From Rebecca billardiae RCC1528 (Eukaryota; Protista; Haptophyta): DNA of 64,000 nt. Positions 1 to 10,700 of the stretch are shown here, piece by piece. The translations under genes were made by a program, and so were the position numbers. The stretch covers positions 248,001 through 312,000 of the forward strand of contig OZ251240.1 of NCBI GenBank assembly GCA_965240325.2, written 5' to 3'. The notes under the pieces were generated by a model. The model searched no databases, was not told where the DNA came from, and worked only from the letters and a program-made list of their open reading frames with translations. Each line of letters starts with the position of its first letter. The first letter of the stretch is position 1.

Positions 1-890
1 CGGAGATCCACGAGCGCTTCCGTCGGCTCGCGTACTTGCAGCGCCAGATCGACGTCCACCGCCACCTCCTCGACGGGCAGGAGCGGCTGCTCCGCGCGCA
101 GGCCGTGGCGCCCGCGGACGACGGCGCGGCGATCGATTCGCGCGAGCTGCGCAGGCTGTCGCGCGACGTGCGCGCGCTCTCGGCGTCGATGGACGGCAAC
201 ACGGCGCGGCTCGAGGCGCTGCGCTCGCAGACACGCGCCGTCGGCGACCTCGCCAACGAGGTCTCCGAGCTCGCCTCGAGCGCGACGCGCGCGCTCGTCA
301 CATCGGCCGCGCTCCACTCAGGGCCGGATTCGTGGCGGCTGGCGCGCGAGCAGCCGGCCGGTCCGGGCAGCGCGGCGCAGGCGCAGGGCGGCAGGGGTGC
401 GCTCGGCGCGGAGGACGCGTCGGCCGCCGCCTCGCTCCCGCCGCTGCCCGCCGCGTCGGCGCAGCTGCAGGAGGCGCGGCTGCGGATGGCTGCGCGCGGC
501 CTGCGCGCCACCTCGCCCGCGGCCGGCGGCGACAGCGGCCGGCATCACATGTTCAGACGACTGCGCCGCGAGCCGGGCGGCCCGCGCGCCGCCGCGGCCA
601 TCGCGGCCGTCGCCGCCGCCGCGCTCGCGCCCGACCTCGCCGCGGCCGACGAGCCCGGCGCGGCCGGCGGCGGCATCCCGCGCGCGCGCATGCGCTCTGC
701 GCTCGTGCCGCGCGCGCTCGAGCGGCACGCAGACGACGTGTGCGCCGTGTGCCTGCACGGGATGCGCGCGGGGCAGGAGGTGGTCTCGCTCCCGGCGTGC
801 GCGCACGACTTTCACGTGGCGTGCATCCGCGAGGCGTGCGCGCACCGCGCGGCGTGCCCGCTCTGCCGGACGGCGGTGCGGTGGTGGTGA
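1..890 (+). CDS. RING-H2 (C3H2C3) zinc-finger protein, putative E3 ubiquitin ligase; 5' end lies upstream of the window
   Basis: The frame is open from base 3 (EIHERFRRLAYLQRQ...) to TGA at 888-890. The C-terminus DDVCAVCLHGMRAGQEVVSLPACAHDFHVACIREACAHRAACPLCR has RING-H2 Cys/His spacing. The N-terminal part looks coiled-coil-like. Confidence 0.8.
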   Translation, partial: EIHERFRRLAYLQRQIDVHRHLLDGQERLLRAQAVAPADDGAAIDSRELRRLSRDVRALSASMDGNTARLEALRSQTRAVGDLANEVSELASSATRALVTSAALHSGPDSWRLAREQPAGPGSAAQAQGGRGALGAEDASAAASLPPLPAASAQLQEARLRMAARGLRATSPAAGGDSGRHHMFRRLRREPGGPRAAAAIAAVAAAALAPDLAAADEPGAAGGGIPRARMRSALVPRALERHADDVCAVCLHGMRAGQEVVSLPACAHDFHVACIREACAHRAACPLCRTAVRWW

Positions 891-1456: not shown

Positions 1457-2520
1457 ATGTGCCGGCTGATGGTGTACCGCGGGCCGCCCATCCTGATGGA
1501 GGAGCTGATCACCAAGCCGACGCGCTCGATCACCTCGCAGGCGCTGAAATGTGCGCCGCGCGCGCGCGGCGGCGCGCGCGGCGGCGCCTGCGGCGCCTGC
1601 TGACGCGACGCGCGCGCGCGGCGCGCGGCCCCGGCAGGCCAGGAGCGCACGCAGGGCTCGGTCAACGGCGATGGCTTCGGCATCGGCTGGTACGACGCGC
1701 CCTCGCCCGGCGCGCACGAGGCCGACGGGTGCGGCGCGGGCTCGGACGAGCCCGGGCTGTTCACGTCGGTGCAGCCGGCGTGGAACAACCTCAACCTGGG
1801 CCGGCTGGCGCGGAAGGTGCGCTCGCCGCTGATCTTCGCGCACGTGCGCGCGGCGTACCCCGGCATGCCCGTCGCCGAGGTCAACTGCCACCCGTTCACC
1901 TTCGGCCGGTACATGTGGATGCACAACGGCGGCGTCGCCTTCTTCAAAGGCGTGCGGCGCGCGCTCGAGGCCTCGCTGCGCGACGAGCTGTACGACTCGA
2001 TCTGCGGCAAGTCGGACTCGGAGGCGGCGTTCATGCTCTTCCTCAACCAGCTCGCCGACACGCGCGCGCGCCTGCCGCCCGCCGAGCTGCGCCGCGCCAT
2101 GGTCGCCACCATCCACGCGCTGCAGACGCTCGTGGCGAGCGCTGCGGCCGCGGCGGCGCCGCGCGTGGACGACCCGTCGCTGCTCAACTTCGTGCTGTCG
2201 GACGGGCACACGATCGTGGCGACGCGGTTCGTGGACCACGCGAGCGCGCCCGCCGCCACGCTGTACTACGCCTCGGGCTCCGCCTTCGCCGCGCAGCAGG
2301 TCGGCGGCGAGTCCGAGTACTCGATGGTGCACGGCGGCGTGCAGCAGGAGGCGGTGATCGTCACCTCAGAGCCGCTCTCTGGATCCTCGCACGACTGGCT
2401 GCCGGTGCCGAGGAACCACATGGTGACGATCGTGCCCGAGGCGGCGGGGGCCGGCCCGCGCGGCGGGGGCGCGCACCCCGCCGCGACCGGCTGCGCGCTG
2501 CGCGTGCTCATGGACCCGAT
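1457..2520 (+). other. DUG3: Domain: Dug3/EgtC-family class II GATase (Ntn hydrolase)
   Basis: The motifs MCR, NGDGFGIGWY, PAWNNLNL, FAHVRAA, NCHPF, MWMHNGG, GKSDSE, SLLNFVLSDG, VATRF and SEPL occur in the order known for the Dug3/EgtC/YafJ family. Confidence 0.9.
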
Positions 2521-2559
2521 CCCGCACGCGCACGAGGCGGAGGCGGCGGCGGCGGCCGA

Positions 2560-2592
<33 letters not shown>

Positions 2593-5500
2593 CGGCGAGG
2601 GCGCGGCGGCGCAGGCGGCCGCCGAGGGCGCGGCAGCGGAGGGCGCGGCGGAGGGCGCGGCGGCGGAGGGCGGCGCGGGCGCGCTCCACTCGCCGTGCAA
2701 CCGCCCCGCCGGCCCCGTCTTCAGGCGCGAGGGCTCGTCCTACAAGCCGCACCGCGACCACCGCGACACGGCCGCGCCGGGCGGCGGCGTCGCCGACGGC
2801 GGCGCGACGCCGCTGGGCGCGCGCCGGCCCGGCCTCGGCGCGTGCGCGGGGTGGGGCTCGGATCGCTCGCTGCACGGCGGGCTGGGCAGCGGGTGCAGCT
2901 CGCGCGAAGGCTCGCCGCCCACCCGCGCGCGCTTCGACCTCGCCGACGGCCACGGCCCCGCCTCCGCCGACTCGACGCCGCGGCCGCCGCGCAGCTCGAC
3001 CGAGGCGGGCGGCGGCGGCAGGCGCGCGCACCCGCCCCTCTCTCAGCCGACGATGGCGGTGCGCGCGCACGGCGAGCAGGCGGTGCTCGCGCTGGCGGTG
3101 CACGCGCCGCGCGAGGGGCCGACGCTGCTACTCACCGGCGCCACCTGCGGCGCGCTCCGCGTCTGGACCCTCCCCTTCTACGAGCTGCACCTCGAGCTCA
3201 GCGGCCACACCCGCGCCGTGCTCTCACTGGCTGGCTTCCGGCCGGACCAAGGCGACGCGGCCGCGGGCCGGCTGGCGGGCGTGGACCTGTGCCTGAGCGC
3301 GTCGGCGGACAACTCGGTGCGCGTGTGGGACCTGCGTGACGGCGCGCCGCTGCTCGTGCTCGCGCACCGCGGCATGGTCCACGCCCTCGCCATCGTGCGC
3401 GTCGCGCTGCCGTGCGCCGGCCGGCGCGCGCGCGCCAGGCGCGCGCCCGCGGACGGCGCCGCGGCCGTCGGCGACGGCAGCGCCGCCGCCGGCTCGGCGG
3501 AGGAGGAGGCGGAGGCGGTGCTGTGCTGCGGCTGCCAGGACCTCTCGATCAAGTGCCTCCTGCTGCCCGAGGTGGTCGCCGCCGCCGCCGCCGCCGCGCC
3601 GCAGCAGCTCCCGCCCTCCGCCTCGCCCGAGACTGCGGCCGCGCTCGCCACCGGCGCGGTCGCCGCCACTGGACTGCGCGCCGCGCGGCCGGGCGCGCCC
3701 GCGATCGCAGTCGACGGCGGCAGCTCGGGCGCGGGGCTCGGCGCGTGCAGCAGCTCGCCCTCGTCGGCGGCGGTGCGCCCGGCGCGCCTCGGCCCGCCGC
3801 GCATCGAGCCCTCCCAGTCGTACGGCGGCGGCTCCAGCGGCAGCCTGCCCAGCCCGCCCCCCGGCGTGCAGCAGCACGGCGGCGGCGCGGGGCGGGAAGC
3901 GGCCGCGGGCGGCTCGGAGCAGCGCCGGGCGCGCGCGGGCGCGGACGCGCGCGGCACGGCCGACGGCGGCGCGCGCGCGGAGCCGGGGTGCGAGGTGCGC
4001 GCGGGGGGCACGCGCTCTGCGCCGCACGCGTTCAAGATGGCCTCGCTCGTCGCGTGCACGCTGCAAGGACACTCTGGGTGCGCGTCCTGCGCGCCCGTCC
4101 GTTGCCCGCCCTGCGCGGCGCTGCGCTGCGCTGCGGCGCTGCGCTGCGCTGCGCTGCGCCGCTGCGCTGCGCTGCGCCGCTGGTTGCGACGGCGTGCCGC
4201 GCCGCGCCGCGCCGCGCGCTCGCGCCGCCGCGACGGGCGGCCAAGCTGAGCCGCGCGCGCACCCGCCGCGCCGCGCGCACCCCGCTCGCAGCTACGTCTT
4301 CCACCTGGCCGCGTGCACCGAGCGCTGGCTCTGCTCCGCCGGCGGCGACGGCGCGCTGCTGCTGTGGCGGCGCGCGGACGCTGGGCCGGCGCGCGGCGCG
4401 ACCACAGACGCTGCAGACGCGGACGGCGGCGGCGCGTGGCGCGTGCCCGCCGACGCGGCGGCGGGCTCGGCGCGGCGGCGCGGCGGGTGCTGCGCGTTCG
4501 CGCTGGAGCACACGCTCGCCGCGCACGCCGGCGCCGCGCTCTGCCTCGCGTACCACGCGCCCACCGCCGCCCTCCTCTCCGGAGGCGCTGACTGCTTTGT
4601 GCGCGTGTGGGACGCGTCGAGCGCGGCGCGGGGCGCGGGGCAGAGGCCGACGGCCGTGCGCTCGCTCGCGGGGCACGCGGCGGCGGTGACGAGCATCGGC
4701 GCGACGGGGAGCCTGATCGTCAGCGCGGACGCGGCGGGGGGCTGCCGCGTGTGGCACGCCGAGTCCCTCCTCTGCCTGCAGACCGTCTGCCCCGCAGAGC
4801 TCACGCCGCTCGGCTCGAGAGACGCGCCGCTCACGGCGGCCGGCGGCGCGGCGCGCGCGCGCGCCGGCGCCGAGCGGCCGCTCGCGCTGAGCTCGCGCAC
4901 GCTGCACACGCTGGTGTGCTTCGCGCCGCGCGAGGGCGCCGCGGCCGACGTCGACCCGACGCACGCGCACGCGCTCTGCGTCTTCGGCCTCGCCGACGGC
5001 CTCCTCCTCGCGCACGACCTGCTGCCGCACGGCCGAGCGCGGCCGCAGCCGGGCGCGCAGCCGCCGCCGCCGCCCTCGGCCGGCGCGCTCGGCGGCGCGG
5101 AGGGCGCGTCGGCGCAGGGCGCGCAGCCGGGGTCGGAGGGCGGCGGCGCGGGCGCCGACGCGGCGGACACGTCGCTCGCCGCGATGCTCGAGCAGCTGCG
5201 CGAGCTCGTCGCGCTCCGCTCCGTCTCCTCTGCGCCGGAGCTCGCCTCCGCCGTCGTGTGCTGCGCCAAGCGGCTGCGGCGCGAGCTGGAGGACCTCGGC
5301 GCAGAGACGAGGCTGGTGTGCTCGCTGGGCGGGGCGGCGGAGGAGGGCGGCGCGGCGGAGGGGCGGCGCGACGGCGCGGCGGGGCCGCAGCACCCCGCCG
5401 GCGCCGGCTGCGCCTCCGGCTTCCCCATCGTCCTCGGCCGCATCCGCGTGGACCCGGCGCTGCCGACAGTGGTGCTGTACGCGCACTACGACGTGGTGGG

Positions 5501-7007
5501 CGCGGGCGGGGACCGCTGGCTCACCGACCCGTTCGGCCTGGCGTGCGTCGACGGGTACGTGTACGGCAGGGGCGTGACGGACAACAAGGGGCCGCTCGTC
5601 GCGATGCTCGCGGCCGTGCGCGAGCTGCTCACCGGCTCGTGCCCCGACGCCGCCGCCAACGGCCACGCCGCCGCCTTCGCCAACGGCCACGGCGGCGCCT
5701 TCGCCGACGGCGGCGGCGGCGGCGGCGGCGGCGCGGACGCGTCGGAGCTCGGGCTGCGCTTCAACCTCGCGTTCTGCCTCGACGGGGAGGAGGAGGTGGG
5801 GAGCAAGGGGTTCGAGGCGGCGCTGGCGCGCGAGCGCGACTGGCTCACCGCGGGCACCACCGTCGCGTGCTCCCTCGTGTGCAACACCTACTGGCTCTCA
5901 GACGAGCGCCCCTCTCTGGTGTACGGCCTGCGCGGGGTCGCCCACCTGGACGTGCGGGTGCGGGGCGGCGCGCGCACGCTGCACTCGGGCGTGCACGGCG
6001 GCGCGGTGCACGAGCCGGCGGCGGAGCTGTGCTCGCTGCTCGGCACGCTGCACGACCACGCCACCGGCGCCGTCGCCGTCCCCGGCTTCGACGCCTCCGT
6101 CCGCCCGCTCTCCGCCGACGAGCTGAGCCTGTACGCGCGCGTGCGGCTGAGTGCAGACGAGTATGGCGCGCGCATCTGCGCGCCCGTGCGCGCGCACGCG
6201 CAGCTGCCGCCGCCGAGGGCGGTGCGCGCGTGCGGCTGCGGGCACGCGGAGGGCGGCGAGGCGATCGAGGTGGGCGAGTTTGGCCTGCTCGCCGACGACG
6301 ACGCCGACGACGACGCCGACGACGCCGACGCCGACGCCGCCCCCGCCTCACCAGAGGCGGCGGCGGAGGCGCGCGCGGCGCGTCTGCACGCGCGCCGGCT
6401 GCTGATGGCGCGCTGGCGGCAGCCGTGCCTCTCGATCAACCAGCTCGCGGCGAACGCGAACTCGAGCAACTACTCGGTGATCCCGCGCGCGGCGTACGCG
6501 CACGTCTCCGTCCGCTTCGTCCCCGAGCAGAGCGCCGCGGAGATGGTGGCGCGCGTGAGCGACCACCTGCGCGCCGCGTTCGCCTCGCTCGGCACGCCCA
6601 ACAGCCTCGAGGTGCGCCCGCTGGGCGGCGGCGACTGGTGGCTCGGCGACCCGCGCTCGCGCGAGTACCGCGCGGCGGCGCGCGCGCTCACGCACGTGTG
6701 GGGCGTCGAGCCCGTGTACATCCGCGAGGGCGGCACCATCCCCGTCTCCGCCGCGCTCGAGCGCCTCTTTGGCGGCGCGCCGACCGTGCACCTCTCGCTC
6801 TCGCAGCCGTCGGACAACGCGCACCTCGAGAACGAGCGCATGAGCCTCAAGGCGCTGTACCGCGCGAAGCAGACGGTGAAGCGCTTCCTGCAGGAGCTCG
6901 CGCTCGAGCTCGGGCTCGCGCACGGCGACGGCGCGCGCGCGCGCGGCGCAGCAACCGACGCCGACGGCAACGCCCGCGCCGGCGCCGCGCGCGCCGCACC
7001 GCGCTGA
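1457..7007 (+). CDS. DUG3/DUG2: Dug3-Dug2 fusion protein: class II glutamine amidotransferase + WD40 repeats + M20A peptidase-like domain; join(1457..1550,1638..4077,4292..7007), ~1749 aa
   Basis: ATG 1457 gives MCRLMVYRG (N-terminal Cys nucleophile). Splicing GT-AG introns 1551-1637 and 4078-4291 yields one continuous frame that restores ...ALKCQERTQGSVNGDGFGIGWY... and the WD repeat LQGHSGYVFHLAAC...SAGGDGALLLW. Stop TGA at 7005-7007. Confidence 0.88.
1551..1637 (+). other. Spliceosomal intron 1 of the Dug3-Dug2 gene (phase 1, 87 nt)
   Basis: GTGCGC donor, GCTGAC branch-like site at ~1599, CGGCAG acceptor. Removal joins the MCR start to the NGDGFG motif in frame. Confidence 0.88.
3050..5010 (+). 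other. Domain: WD40 repeats with long Ala/Gly-rich insertions
   Basis: LSGHTRAVLSL...SASADNSVRVWD; LQGHSGYVFHL...SAGGDGALLLW; LAAHAGAALCL...SGGADCFVRVWD; LAGHAAAVTSI...SADAAGGCRVWH. Confidence 0.85.
4078..4291 (+). other. Spliceosomal intron 2 of the Dug3-Dug2 gene (phase 2, 214 nt), containing a degenerate (GCGCT)n tract
   Basis: GTGCGC donor, GCTGAG branch-like site at ~4245, TCGCAG acceptor. Removal joins ORF 1769..4249 to ORF 3336..7007 within a WD repeat. Confidence 0.88.
5180..6910 (+). other. DUG2: Domain: M20A metallopeptidase-like (Dug2/Dug1/CNDP family), Dug2-type
   Basis: YAHYDVV, WLTDPF, YGRGVTDNKGPL, DGEEEVGS, CNTYW, YGLRG, LHSGVHGG, RWRQPCLSI, SVRFVP, IREGGTIP, SDNAHLENER. Confidence 0.88.
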
Positions 7008-7760: not shown

Positions 7761-10700
7761 TCACGGCGGACTTAACACAGGCGGCGGGATAAACGTCGAC
7801 GCCGACATGCGAAACAGCGACGCCTGCCACTCGGCAATCAGCCGCGCGACGTCGGCGAGGCTCGCGCGCTCGTTCGGGTCGATGACGAGGATGCACTTGA
7901 CGAGGTCCTTCGCGTGGTCAGAGAGCGGTTGCTGAGGATGCACGGACTTGAACGCGCGATCGATCACCTCACTCACCTGCCTCTGCTGCGCACCGACAGG
8001 GAAGTCCGGCATGTCTGCGACCAGCGTCTCGAACGCGATGATGCCAAACGCCCACACATCGACGCGCGCGTCGTACGGCGCGGCCAGCAGTGTGGGAGAG
8101 TACTGCTCGGGCGCCATGTACCCCGCCGAGCCTGCAAACGTGCGCGCGGAGTTGCCCTCGTTCAGCGGGCGCGTAGCAATGCCGAGATCGCACACCTTGA
8201 CGATACGACGGCCAGCAGCGCCCTCCGCGTCCGGGGCGCCCTTCGGGTCCCGGAGGAGCTGGTGGAGCAGGATGTTCTCGGGCTTGAGGTCGCGGTGGAT
8301 GATCTTGAGCGAGTGCATCGCGCCGAGGCCGCTCGCCAGCTGCTGGAGGAGGTCGGCGGCCTCGATCTCGCTCAGGGGGCCGTGCTCCCTCATGTAGTCG
8401 CGGAGCGTGCCCTGGTTTGCGTACTCAATCTCGAGGTACACGCTCTCCTTGTCGCAAAACGCGCTGTATACTGCGCAGTGCGCGCGCACACATGGCGACG
8501 AGAGTATGACCATGAGGGCATGGATGGGCGCCGTCGCAGCCCGAACAGCACATGCGGTGCGCGCACGCAAAGGGCGCGCACATTTGGCGACGTTATCGTG
8601 GTTGCACATGCGCTGCGTGAGGATCTCGCGCAGGAGGTTCTCGATGTTCTTGTTGTTGCGCAGCCGCTTGAAGGCGATCTGCTTGAGCACCACCATCTGC
8701 GGAGGGTCGCTGCCGTTCACCGTGGCAGCGAAGACATGGTCACTCTGCGCGCCCTCTGCAAATCGTTCTTTCGTTTTGGTGAAGCTGCCCTCGACGGTGC
8801 GCGCAAAGGCCAGCTGGGGCGGCTCCATTTGCGCGGGAAAGCCCTTGACAAGTGCTTGCAGCAGCGTGCACGCCTTGTGATAGTCCCCAGTCGCCAGATG
8901 CGACTCCACCTCCGAAGACAGGCAGTCGACCCACCAGATGCGGTGATTGTCGGTCGGCCCATCGTTCTCTTGGCAGCGCGTGTAGTACTCCGTGTACTCC
9001 TCAAACACCTGTTGGAGGCACATCAACCGCGGCACATCATATCATCACGGATCACGCATCGTCACGGGGCGGGTGGGATGGGAGACGGCAGTAGCAGTAA
9101 GTCAAGCAAGCCGCGTGTGCGCGGCACACACAGGGAGCATGTATTCGGCCTGAGCGCACCTCTTCCATGTTGAGCGCAGGGTTGGCGTCGGCAGCCGCCA
9201 CAATCACCGAAGTAAGCCGGACGTCGCTGAGCCGCGAGCTCACTGTGCTCTCGATGGTCACGGACGGCCTGGGTGCTCGCCAAGCAGAGCCGGCTGCGCC
9301 ACTGCCATCGTGGGACACAGCGAGGCCGAAGTCACTGCTGTTGATTTTGCGAGACGTGCCGGGCGGAAGCGACGACACCGAGCTAGTCGACCCTGGCGGG
9401 CGATCGAAGCAGCCGTCCACGCTGCTGGGCTTGGGCGGACTCGAGCCGCCCGCTGGCTGAGGCTGGAAGAACGGCCACGAAAACAGCTCGCCCTGCTGTG
9501 CGGCGGGTGGCTCGGGCGGGTCGCTCGCGGTCCCCGGCGAGGGTGCGCCTTGCCCGCCGCTTCCCTGCGCGGCGACGGGGGGGGGGCATCGACGTGGTCG
9601 TGGAGAGCGGTGAGTCAGCGACACCGATGGCGCTGCCGGCGGGAGGAGGCGCTGCGGACGGGCGGCCTGCTCGCACAATGCTGTTGATGCGCGATGTAGA
9701 GCTTGTCGCAGCCGAGCTGCCGCCAGCCGGCATCCTCGAGGCGGCCGAGCTGGCGCCGAATCTCGCACCTCGCCCCGCGTCTGCTGATGGCGGGTTGCCG
9801 GTGGAGATGGGGTGAGGCGACGGCGTGGTATCATTGTCCTTCCGCGTCAGCGGCGAGCTCAGGAGGTTGGAGGTGACGCTGGCGGATAGCTCACCGACGC
9901 GCGTGTCTGGCGATGAAGCAGCCCGTGACTCGCTGCGCGCGCCGGCAGCATTCGCGCCATCAGCATCCGTGGGAACAGCCACTGCGTCGGCGGCGGGCTC
10001 CTGCTGCGACACCAGCTTCATCATCACCACCTGCGCGCAGCGTTTGCGCGCGTGTGTGTGGCGTGCGAGCGGCTGCGTGAGCGGCGCTGAGCGGGTGCGG
10101 CGCAGCGCGCGGAGACAGCGAGGTGCGACGCGCGCTGCGCACCGGCGGACTCGACGGCGTCAGCGCGTCCTGCTCCGCCTCCACCTCCATCGGCGCAGCG
10201 CTGCCCGACGCCATCACCACCTGAGCCATACGCATCGGCGGCTGCGCGGATGCAGCTTTGCCACCACCCATCAGCTGCGGCGCCGCCGTTGGCGGCGTCT
10301 CAAGCTGCTGGCTCGGCTGCGCGCTACTTGGCCCGCGGCCCGCGGACTGCTTGGTCTCACCCCCCATCGGCGCAGGGCTGCCCGCGCCAGGCGGCTCGAT
10401 CTGCGCGCGCGCGTGCGCGGCGCGCGAGCGGCTGCGTGAGCGGCGTTGAGCGGATGCGGCGCAGCGCGCGGAGACAGCGAGGTGCGACGTGCGCTGCGCA
10501 CCGGCGGACTCGACGGCGTCAGTGCGCCCAGCTCCGCCTCAACCACCACCGGCGCCTCGCTGCCCGCGCCAGCTGGCGGATGCTCCTGCGCGAAGCCATC
10601 GGCGCGCGCGCGCGCGCATCCGGCCGCAGCCGCTGTGTGAGTAGCGTGCACGGGCGCGGCGCAGTGTGAGGTCACAGCGAGGCGCGACGTGCGCTGCGCA

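Follow-up and report, generated by a model that had tools for sequence, protein, structure and literature searches.

Does a single gene of a haptophyte alga encode, as one polypeptide, the enzyme that yeast assembles from the two proteins Dug2p and Dug3p, and if so, is the fusion an invention of that alga? The question is raised by a stretch of 64,000 nucleotides from Rebecca billardiae RCC1528 (contig OZ251240.1, positions 248,001 to 312,000; hereafter the window, with positions counted from its first nucleotide), in which a gene at 1457-7007 on the forward strand joins a Dug3-like class II glutamine amidotransferase (GATase) domain to the WD40 and M20 domains of a Dug2-like protein. In yeast, glutathione is split into glutamate and Cys-Gly by the Dug2p/Dug3p pair (PMC9804317), which also accepts gamma-Glu-Met as a substrate (PMC7617739). 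The analysis makes it likely that the locus is an intact three-exon gene for a 1,749-amino-acid single-chain homologue of the yeast (Dug2p-Dug3p) enzyme, that this homologue belongs to a widespread family of fused proteins, and that the fused form is probably the older one.

The coding sequence comprises 5,250 nt after removal of two introns, from the ATG at 1457 to the stop that ends at 7007, and its translation of 1,749 residues contains no stop other than the terminal one. All parts lie on the forward strand. Exon 1 (1457-1550) consists of the ATG with the first 31 codons and one further nucleotide, and is followed by intron 1 (1551-1637; 87 nt, GT..AG, phase 1), which if kept would bring in an in-frame TGA at 1601-1603. 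Exon 2 (1638-4077) carries the remainder of the GATase domain, a linker and the first WD40 blades. After intron 2 (4078-4291; 214 nt, GT..AG, phase 2), exon 3 (4292-7007) completes the protein with the remaining WD40 blades, the M20 part and the tail. Both introns are made almost wholly of GC-rich simple repeats, (GC)n and GCGGCGCGC in intron 1, and (CTGCG)n and (GCCGC)n in intron 2.

Homologue alignments run gap-free over both splice junctions. At junction 1, SQALKC is joined to QERTQGSVNGDGFG, in agreement with the N-terminal sequences of fused as well as fungal proteins. At junction 2, LQGHSG is joined to YVFHL...SAGGDGALLLW, which completes a WD40 blade. The closest database relative of the window protein, P0007, is encoded by a JGI metagenome contig (L001) of 68% GC, in which exon 1 is 81% identical to that of the window and is followed by an intron at the same codon and phase as intron 1 (983-1097; 115 nt against 87 nt, differing in both length and sequence). 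This contig has no intron at the site of intron 2 and reads through as LRGHTGYVLALRAC where the spliced window sequence joins LQGHSG to YVFHLAAC, and removal of intron 2 restores the blade that is unbroken in L001 and in all homologues. GATase and WD40 regions lie within one 847-aa open reading frame (ORF) of L001 that continues up to the contig end. Identity to the window protein is 58% over the GATase part (58-81% over exon 1 and the GATase part overall) and 44% over the WD40 part of exon 3.

The lack of a stop codon between the domains is weak evidence in itself because long ORFs abound in DNA of this composition. The coding region has a GC content of ~75-85% (~80% overall) with lower-GC DNA on either side, and in DNA of this kind in the window ORFs of 500-1,200 aa are present in several frames of both strands. 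The codon-position composition is more informative. The GC content at third codon positions (GC3) is 0.92-1.0 in one frame throughout 1640-4039, both low-complexity linkers included. The first of these linkers, at 2453-3055 in exon 2, comprises ~200 Ala/Gly/Glu-rich residues ahead of the first WD40 blade, contains GGC-type triplet repeats at 2536-2675 and is about twice as long as its counterpart in L001; its GC3 is 0.96-1.0 in the frame of both flanking domains. The codon-position signal is flat over intron 2, returns in the frame of exon 3 and extends as far as 7007, beyond which (after 7040) the overall GC content drops to 0.24-0.5. Within 1457-7007 the GC profile contains no dip of the intergenic type, and such dips flank the gene on both sides. 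Read from the sequence in this way, by GC3, homologue colinearity and the relative L001, the three-exon model appears firm.

The N-terminal part of the protein is a GATase domain, of which the portion after exon 1 occupies residues 32-303 (1638-2452) at the start of exon 2 as judged from Pfam, the alignment and L001. The Pfam family GATase_4 is matched with 43.5 bits (gathering cut-off 23), and the motifs NGDGFG, PAWNN, AHVRAA, NCHPF and MHNG are all aligned. The protein begins MCRLMVY, with the codon for Cys2 at 1460-1462, and is colinear with fused and fungal Dug3-type proteins. In an N-terminal nucleophile (Ntn) hydrolase the free amino group of the cysteine must be exposed once the methionine is removed. 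There is no N-terminal extension before Cys2, which is predicted to be the nucleophile of a class II (Ntn) amidotransferase. The nearest PDB entry is 3mdn, a bacterial stand-alone class II GATase (E 7e-26), with EgtC at E 4e-7. Identification as EgtC itself was considered and rejected, as the NCBIfam equivalog TIGR03442 scores 139.2 bits, below its cut-off of 218.65, and the domain is placed among the eukaryotic Dug3 and fused proteins in the tree. Identity to fungal Dug3 is 35-46%, and the best matches after P0007 are 41-53% identical.

The remainder of the protein corresponds to Dug2. The first WD40 blades (3056-4077) are split by a long low-complexity insert and end inside the GHSG of a blade, and the remaining blades follow at the start of exon 3 (4292-5027, to about residue 1090, from Pfam, PDB and L001). 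The Pfam WD40 model gives 40.7 bits in exon 3 (cut-off 27) and 25.7 bits, slightly below the cut-off, in exon 2, where WD40 and beta-propeller matches fall at residues 481-586 of the exon-2 piece; the exon-3 region also matches WDR5 and designed propellers in the PDB. Residues 1144-1702 (5187-6863) form the catalytic and dimerization domains of an M20A peptidase-like protein (Peptidase_M20 65.8 bits, cut-off 24.6; M20_dimer 23.8 bits, cut-off 21). A C-terminal tail follows at 6864-7007, with the stop codon at 7005-7007 and AT-rich intergenic DNA beyond. The order WD40, Peptidase_M20 and M20_dimer is colinear with that of fungal Dug2-like proteins at ~30% identity over the WD40 and M20 parts. 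In the PDB the C-terminal domain is matched by CN2, CNDP1 and yeast Dug1p with E values of 1e-56 to 1e-61 (mouse CN2, 2zof, E 8e-61). The preliminary description of this locus had proposed much of this arrangement, and on these points it stands: start, stop and the junctions 1550/1638 and 4077/4292 were recovered on recomputation, the GATase and WD40 parts share exon 2 in one frame, the domain with the N-terminal cysteine and the Dug3 motif set comes first in the chain and is not EgtC, and the M20A domain, which bears the Asn signature described below, follows the WD40 repeats in the same frame.

How widely this arrangement occurs was examined with a search by the GATase part, kept to long candidates, and with an exhaustive profile-free search of 1.8 billion cluster representatives. 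The former retrieved dozens of proteins, 1,100-1,400 residues in length, with WD40 and M20 regions as well, and the latter agrees. Classification with domain probes found GATase and M20 together in 73 of 344 retrieved proteins, always in the order GATase-WD40-M20. The GATase domain starts at residue 1-3 in 61 of the 73, and 42 start with MC; most of the others resemble truncated gene models. The fused proteins come from at least seven major eukaryotic lineages. They are found in Chlorophyta (Coccomyxa, Trebouxia, Elliptochloris, Auxenochlorella, Picochlorum, Chloropicon, Bryopsis, Caulerpa, Cymbomonas and a pedinophyte), streptophyte algae (Chlorokybus, Mesostigma, Chara, Spirogloea), red algae (Porphyridium, Cyanidium), Amoebozoa (Soliformovum, Planoprotostelium), apusomonads (Thecamonas), Holozoa (Monosiga, Amoebidium), alveolates (Eimeria, Vitrella, Chromera) and Euglenozoa (Entosiphon, Diplonema, Hemistasia). 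For Soliformovum, Amoebidium, Entosiphon and Diplonema the ORFs are complete and derive from transcriptome assemblies, and the fusion is therefore carried on one mRNA in these organisms. Named NCBI or UniProt entries, many under generic names, exist for Chara, Coccomyxa, Monosiga, Thecamonas, Vitrella, Porphyridium and Eimeria.

A further 119 proteins have WD40 and M20 parts without a GATase domain; all are of Dug2 length, and nearly all the named ones are fungal. Every named fungal match is split, with Dug2-like proteins of ~800-1,000 residues and separate Dug3-like proteins of ~450-550 residues, the former drawn from Mucoromycota, Glomeromycota, Basidiomycota and Ascomycota. In two early-diverging fungi, Calcarisporiella and Gigaspora, no GATase gene adjoining DUG2 was found. 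As the fused form is common across eukaryotes, it is the fungi with their split genes that are the exception. By its sequence, the window gene is another member of an existing, poorly named eukaryotic GATase-WD40-M20 family and not an innovation of this alga. Of the earlier proposal of a self-contained Dug3-Dug2 fusion, the single Dug-like polypeptide is thus retained, and the special Rosetta-stone event in the alga is not; nor is the fusion unusual outside fungi, since the survey across eukaryotes returned these 73 proteins and all sampled fungi are split. The suggestion that the protein belongs to a non-fungal eukaryote agrees with the trees: none of the three places the window protein in the fungal clades, and both of those that are resolved around the green clade leave it outside that clade too.

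The enzymatic role proposed for the fused protein follows that of the yeast complex. In the 2012 study of Kaur et al. in J Biol Chem, the WD40 domain of yeast Dug2p reportedly binds Dug3p, the M20 domain is said to form the Dug2p homodimer, and Dug2p is said to be without peptidase activity of its own. In the fused protein, removal of Met1 would leave Cys2 free to attack the gamma-glutamyl amide of glutathione or of another gamma-Glu peptide, and Cys-Gly would be released first and glutamate after it. The WD40 propeller would pack against the GATase domain in cis, within the same chain, by analogy with the Dug2p surface that holds Dug3p, and the M20 domains would pair two chains to form an equivalent of (Dug2-Dug3)2. 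A separate dipeptidase of the Dug1/CNDP2 type would then split Cys-Gly. By analogy with yeast the substrate would be glutathione.

Alternatively, the fused enzyme might act on something other than glutathione, such as gamma-glutamyl dipeptides or other gamma-glutamyl conjugates, or an amide that has no part in the recycling of sulfur. The GATase domain has kin among the EgtC-type gamma-glutamyl amidohydrolases and among uncharacterized bacterial stand-alone enzymes, its identity to fungal Dug3 is modest (see above), and the yeast pair itself accepts gamma-Glu-Met (PMC7617739). Domain order, phylogeny and the Dug2 signature residue nevertheless point to orthology with the yeast enzyme. Glutathione is, moreover, the most abundant gamma-glutamyl compound of the eukaryotic cytosol. 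A different substrate is considered unlikely on these grounds, although it is a possibility to be taken seriously.

The trees bear on the question of whether the fused or the split form came first. The GATase tree was rooted on the bacterial stand-alone enzymes of ~285 aa, one of which lies in a clearly bacterial gene neighbourhood, and the M20 tree on 11 prokaryotic M20A dipeptidases; the tree of the WD40-M20 half was calculated with LG+G4. In the GATase trees the window protein and P0007 form a pair with 100% support, outside the green-lineage and fungal clades. In the rooted GATase tree this pair lies within the eukaryotic clade, from which the bacterial enzymes are separate; the fused Thecamonas protein branches first and the fungal Dug3 clade sits among fused lineages. 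Forcing all fused sequences into one GATase clade costs 13.4 log-likelihood units and is rejected by the approximately unbiased (AU) test (p = 0.022). In the rooted M20 tree the Dug2-type clade has support of 100/100, with Thecamonas again first (88/81). The WD40-M20 tree places the window protein in a group of 22 members (95/99) that includes Thecamonas, Amoebozoa, Entosiphon and the fungal clade. The gene trees thus weakly favour a fission in fungi.

The distribution of the two forms appears to be the stronger argument. The fused gene is present in Amoebozoa, apusomonads and Holozoa, the three sampled lineages that bracket Fungi, as well as in Archaeplastida, alveolates and Euglenozoa. Since the sampled fungi are all split, one fission in fungi is the economical reading, compared with several fusions or transfers. 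The opposite course of events, in which separate Dug2 and Dug3 are ancestral as in fungi and the product of a single fusion, or of a few, was spread among eukaryotes by gene transfer, would fit the M20 half, for which fungi as sister to all others are not rejected, and some relationships among fused proteins that depart from the species tree (diplonemids with alveolates in three trees, Monosiga with red algae in the WD40-M20 tree). Stand-alone GATases in transcripts of some Amoebozoa (Copromyxa, Paramoeba) could be read in the same direction. Several transfers or independent fusions would, however, be needed in place of one fission, the bracketing lineages are all fused, and the GATase half speaks against a single fused clade; an ancestral split state is accordingly held to be improbable, if not negligibly so. 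Among eukaryotes the fused gene is thus probably the older of the two forms, and the separate DUG2 and DUG3 of fungi the product of a later fission. The fuller proposal, that the DUG enzyme is an ancient pan-eukaryotic single chain that dates from the eukaryote root or close to it, that fission gave the fungal pair, and that the pathway runs in algae, amoebae, apicomplexan relatives and euglenozoans, is one that we favour on balance, and with reserve.

The active site of the M20 domain is altered in a characteristic way. The residues H1243, D1275, E1345, E1346, H1409 and H1689 correspond to CN2 H101, D132, E166, E167, H228 (of the partner subunit) and H445, and the fifth metal ligand, CN2 D195, is replaced by N1376 (codon 5883-5885). 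The same position is Asn in 63 of 67 fused proteins (Ser in the other four) and in 118 of 120 split proteins (a gap in two); all 11 prokaryotic M20A sequences, and CN2 besides, have Asp there. Asn at this position is treated here as the signature of the Dug2-type M20 domain, a definition derived within the present analysis and not taken from the literature. The histidine, the aspartate, the metal-binding glutamate and both further histidines are retained near-invariantly in the 120 split and 67 fused members. Dug2-type domains separate from the prokaryotic M20A dipeptidases of the outgroup with 100/100 support in the M20 tree; a separation from eukaryotic Dug1/CNDP2 is suggested by the signature residue and the linkage to WD40. 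Identification as a Dug1/CNDP2-type Cys-Gly dipeptidase was rejected, the set of five ligands being incomplete (N1376 for Asp) with the other four present.

Because one of the five metal ligands is Asn (or Ser) across Dug2-type proteins, the M20 domain probably does not hydrolyse peptides. Its pocket may still be constrained, perhaps by dimerization, by binding of one metal or by holding the Cys-Gly end of the substrate. If the M20 domain were instead an active, possibly mono-metal, Cys-Gly dipeptidase, the protein would be bifunctional and one chain would convert glutathione to Glu, Cys and Gly. Retention of the six residues named above, near-invariant in the family, implies selection on the pocket and is what this possibility has in its favour. 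Against it, no family member has Asp at the D195 position and the general-base Glu (CN2 E166) has been lost in 17 of 67 fused proteins, as compared with 1 of 120 split ones; yeast Dug2p is reported by Kaur et al. to lack peptidase activity. A bifunctional protein is therefore quite improbable. Replacement of the general base is seen for example in Chlorokybus, Cymbomonas, Porphyridium, Entosiphon and Amoebidium, and the metal-binding Glu beside it is kept in 186 of 187 Dug2-type proteins.

It could also be supposed that two transcription units, or two isoforms, are present at the locus, one for a Dug3-like product and one for a Dug2-like product starting at Met504, with the open linker a mere by-product of GC content. 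At ~80% GC, stop-free frames of hundreds of codons are indeed common in any frame, and an ATG does lie just 5' of the first WD40 blade. The GATase part, however, has no stop codon of its own, the linker keeps the GC3 periodicity of a single frame and shows none of the GC dips seen on either side of the gene, the lower-GC relative L001 holds both domains in its 847-aa ORF, and fused transcripts are known in other taxa. Two separate units are very improbable on this evidence. A recent, lineage-specific Rosetta-stone fusion of once separate Dug3 and Dug2 genes in this alga, in line with the published description of the DUG pathway as a fungus-specific system of two proteins (passages of PMC9012958; PMC7214794), can be dismissed almost entirely, given that the architecture recurs across the retrieved proteins and lineages counted above, that P0007, the only close relative of the window protein, is also fused, that the two domain trees have fused proteins as their backbone, and that complete transcript-derived ORFs argue against the other fused entries being annotation chimeras.

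Several points weigh against the favoured account as a whole, in which a single-chain enzyme cleaves glutathione, its M20 domain serves without catalysis, and the fused form preceded the fungal pair. The substrate of the fused members is drawn by analogy from yeast, and the roles assigned to the WD40 and M20 domains are those reported for yeast Dug2p by Kaur et al. 2012. The four remaining metal ligands of the M20 domain are strictly kept and the general-base Glu is present in most members, so that the pocket apparently still does something. In the M20 half, the placement of fungi as sister to all others has an AU p value of 0.32, and the AU test on the GATase half was framed post hoc, after inspection of the tree, and depends in part on Thecamonas, which is a long branch. 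As to the gene model, in-frame introns could be concealed in the two low-complexity linkers (~200 and ~160 residues), and a Dug2-only isoform might in principle begin at the internal Met504, just ahead of the WD40 region.

A model of the compact Chlorokybus homologue was obtained with AlphaFold2 from an alignment of 49 fused proteins (1,147 residues; mean predicted local distance difference test score, pLDDT, 86.7; predicted template modelling score, pTM, 0.82). The model indicates a packed three-domain body for this homologue rather than beads on a string. Comparison of the model with the PDB by Foldseek matched only the M20 part (CN2, CNDP1, Dug1p) and generic WD40 propellers, and no Dug2/Dug3-like assembly was found among the solved structures of the PDB by sequence and Foldseek searches.

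Some further matches stand beside the fused family. An oomycete protein from Aphanomyces invadans (P0231, 914 aa), labelled 'variant', contains WD40 and M20 only; it may have a longer isoform, possibly a fused one. Among the listed fused or Dug2-type matches none is named as a land-plant or animal protein, although streptophyte algae, a choanoflagellate and an ichthyosporean are represented, and no systematic search for them was made; the pattern suggests losses in embryophytes and metazoans. Five proteins (P0100, P0083, P0327, P0024 and P0059) represent other architectures built from the same modules, including a 1,502-aa protein of the fungal clade with its GATase at 1076-1318, an Ectocarpus GATase with WSC, a combination of WD40, M20 and SAM domains, and GATases joined to Exo_endo_phos or PTPA; some of these may be gene-model chimeras. 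The contig DAHZQE010000468.1 (L005), from a metagenome-assembled genome (MAG) labelled 'Ferrimicrobium sp.', has an ORF for a fungal Dug2 with WD40 repeats that is sister to Zymoseptoria in the M20 tree (100/99), and is most likely eukaryotic contamination of the MAG bin.

Around the window gene, an out-of-frame ATG at 1341 opens an ORF of 42 codons that ends at 1469 and overlaps the main start at 1457; this could be a regulatory upstream ORF, provided that the 5' untranslated region extends that far. The upstream neighbour encodes a RING-H2 finger protein (36-890, forward strand; zf-RING_2, E 7e-9) and the downstream neighbour a protein kinase (7761-9035, reverse strand; Pkinase, E 2e-42), both set apart from the Dug gene by spacers of lower GC.

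The DUG pathway is still termed fungus-specific in passages of PMC9012958 and fungus- or fungi-specific in PMC7214794, and in a study of Euglena a single transcript contig is given for the 'GSH degradosome' with no further remark (PMC6351624). The literature searched yielded no description of the fused Dug3-Dug2 architecture. The family is already present in public databases, unremarked, and as far as the searches of the literature reach, a pan-eukaryotic single-chain DUG enzyme has not yet been stated in print. The value of the window gene is therefore that of a pointer: the literature presents Dug2/Dug3 as a fungal route of two proteins, and the databases hold a one-chain version from most supergroups. 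If the fused protein hydrolyses glutathione, cytosolic recycling by this route, independent of gamma-glutamyl transpeptidase (GGT), would be widespread in algae and protists, with a bearing on the sulfur and nitrogen economy of phytoplankton and on parasites, Eimeria among them. For structural work, the fused forms would also offer a natural single-chain construct of a complex that has no solved structure, and the fungi would provide a clean case of gene fission with the interaction retained.

Among known systems, EgtC and the bacterial stand-alone GATases (3mdn) share with the window protein the Ntn-hydrolase fold family and, for EgtC, the gamma-glutamyl amide chemistry; the window protein falls under the EgtC cut-off, and the bacterial group of ~285 aa is separate in the trees and lacks WD40 and M20. 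Dug1p, CNDP2 (CN2) and CNDP1 (PDB 4g1p, 2zof and 3dlj) are the best structural matches and share four of the five metal ligands, the general base and the trans His with the M20 domain, but are true dipeptidases without WD40 or GATase and have Asp where the window protein has N1376. The (Dug2p-Dug3p)2 complex of S. cerevisiae has the same class II GATase with an N-terminal Cys and the same motifs, the same WD40 propeller and the same M20A domain with its Asn signature, and differs in consisting of two polypeptides where the window gene predicts one with long low-complexity linkers. The single-chain architecture is shared with the fused database entries, among them Chara braunii CBR_g22949, Coccomyxa, Monosiga MONBRDRAFT_34060, Thecamonas XP_013754763.1, Vitrella CEM25860.1, Porphyridium KAA8496877.1 ('putative di- and tripeptidase DUG2') and Eimeria EBH_0060350, which have the same domain order and N-terminal MCR and align colinearly. 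From most of these the window protein differs in being 400-600 residues longer through its low-complexity inserts, and together with P0007 it forms a branch of its own, outside the green clade, in the trees of the GATase half.

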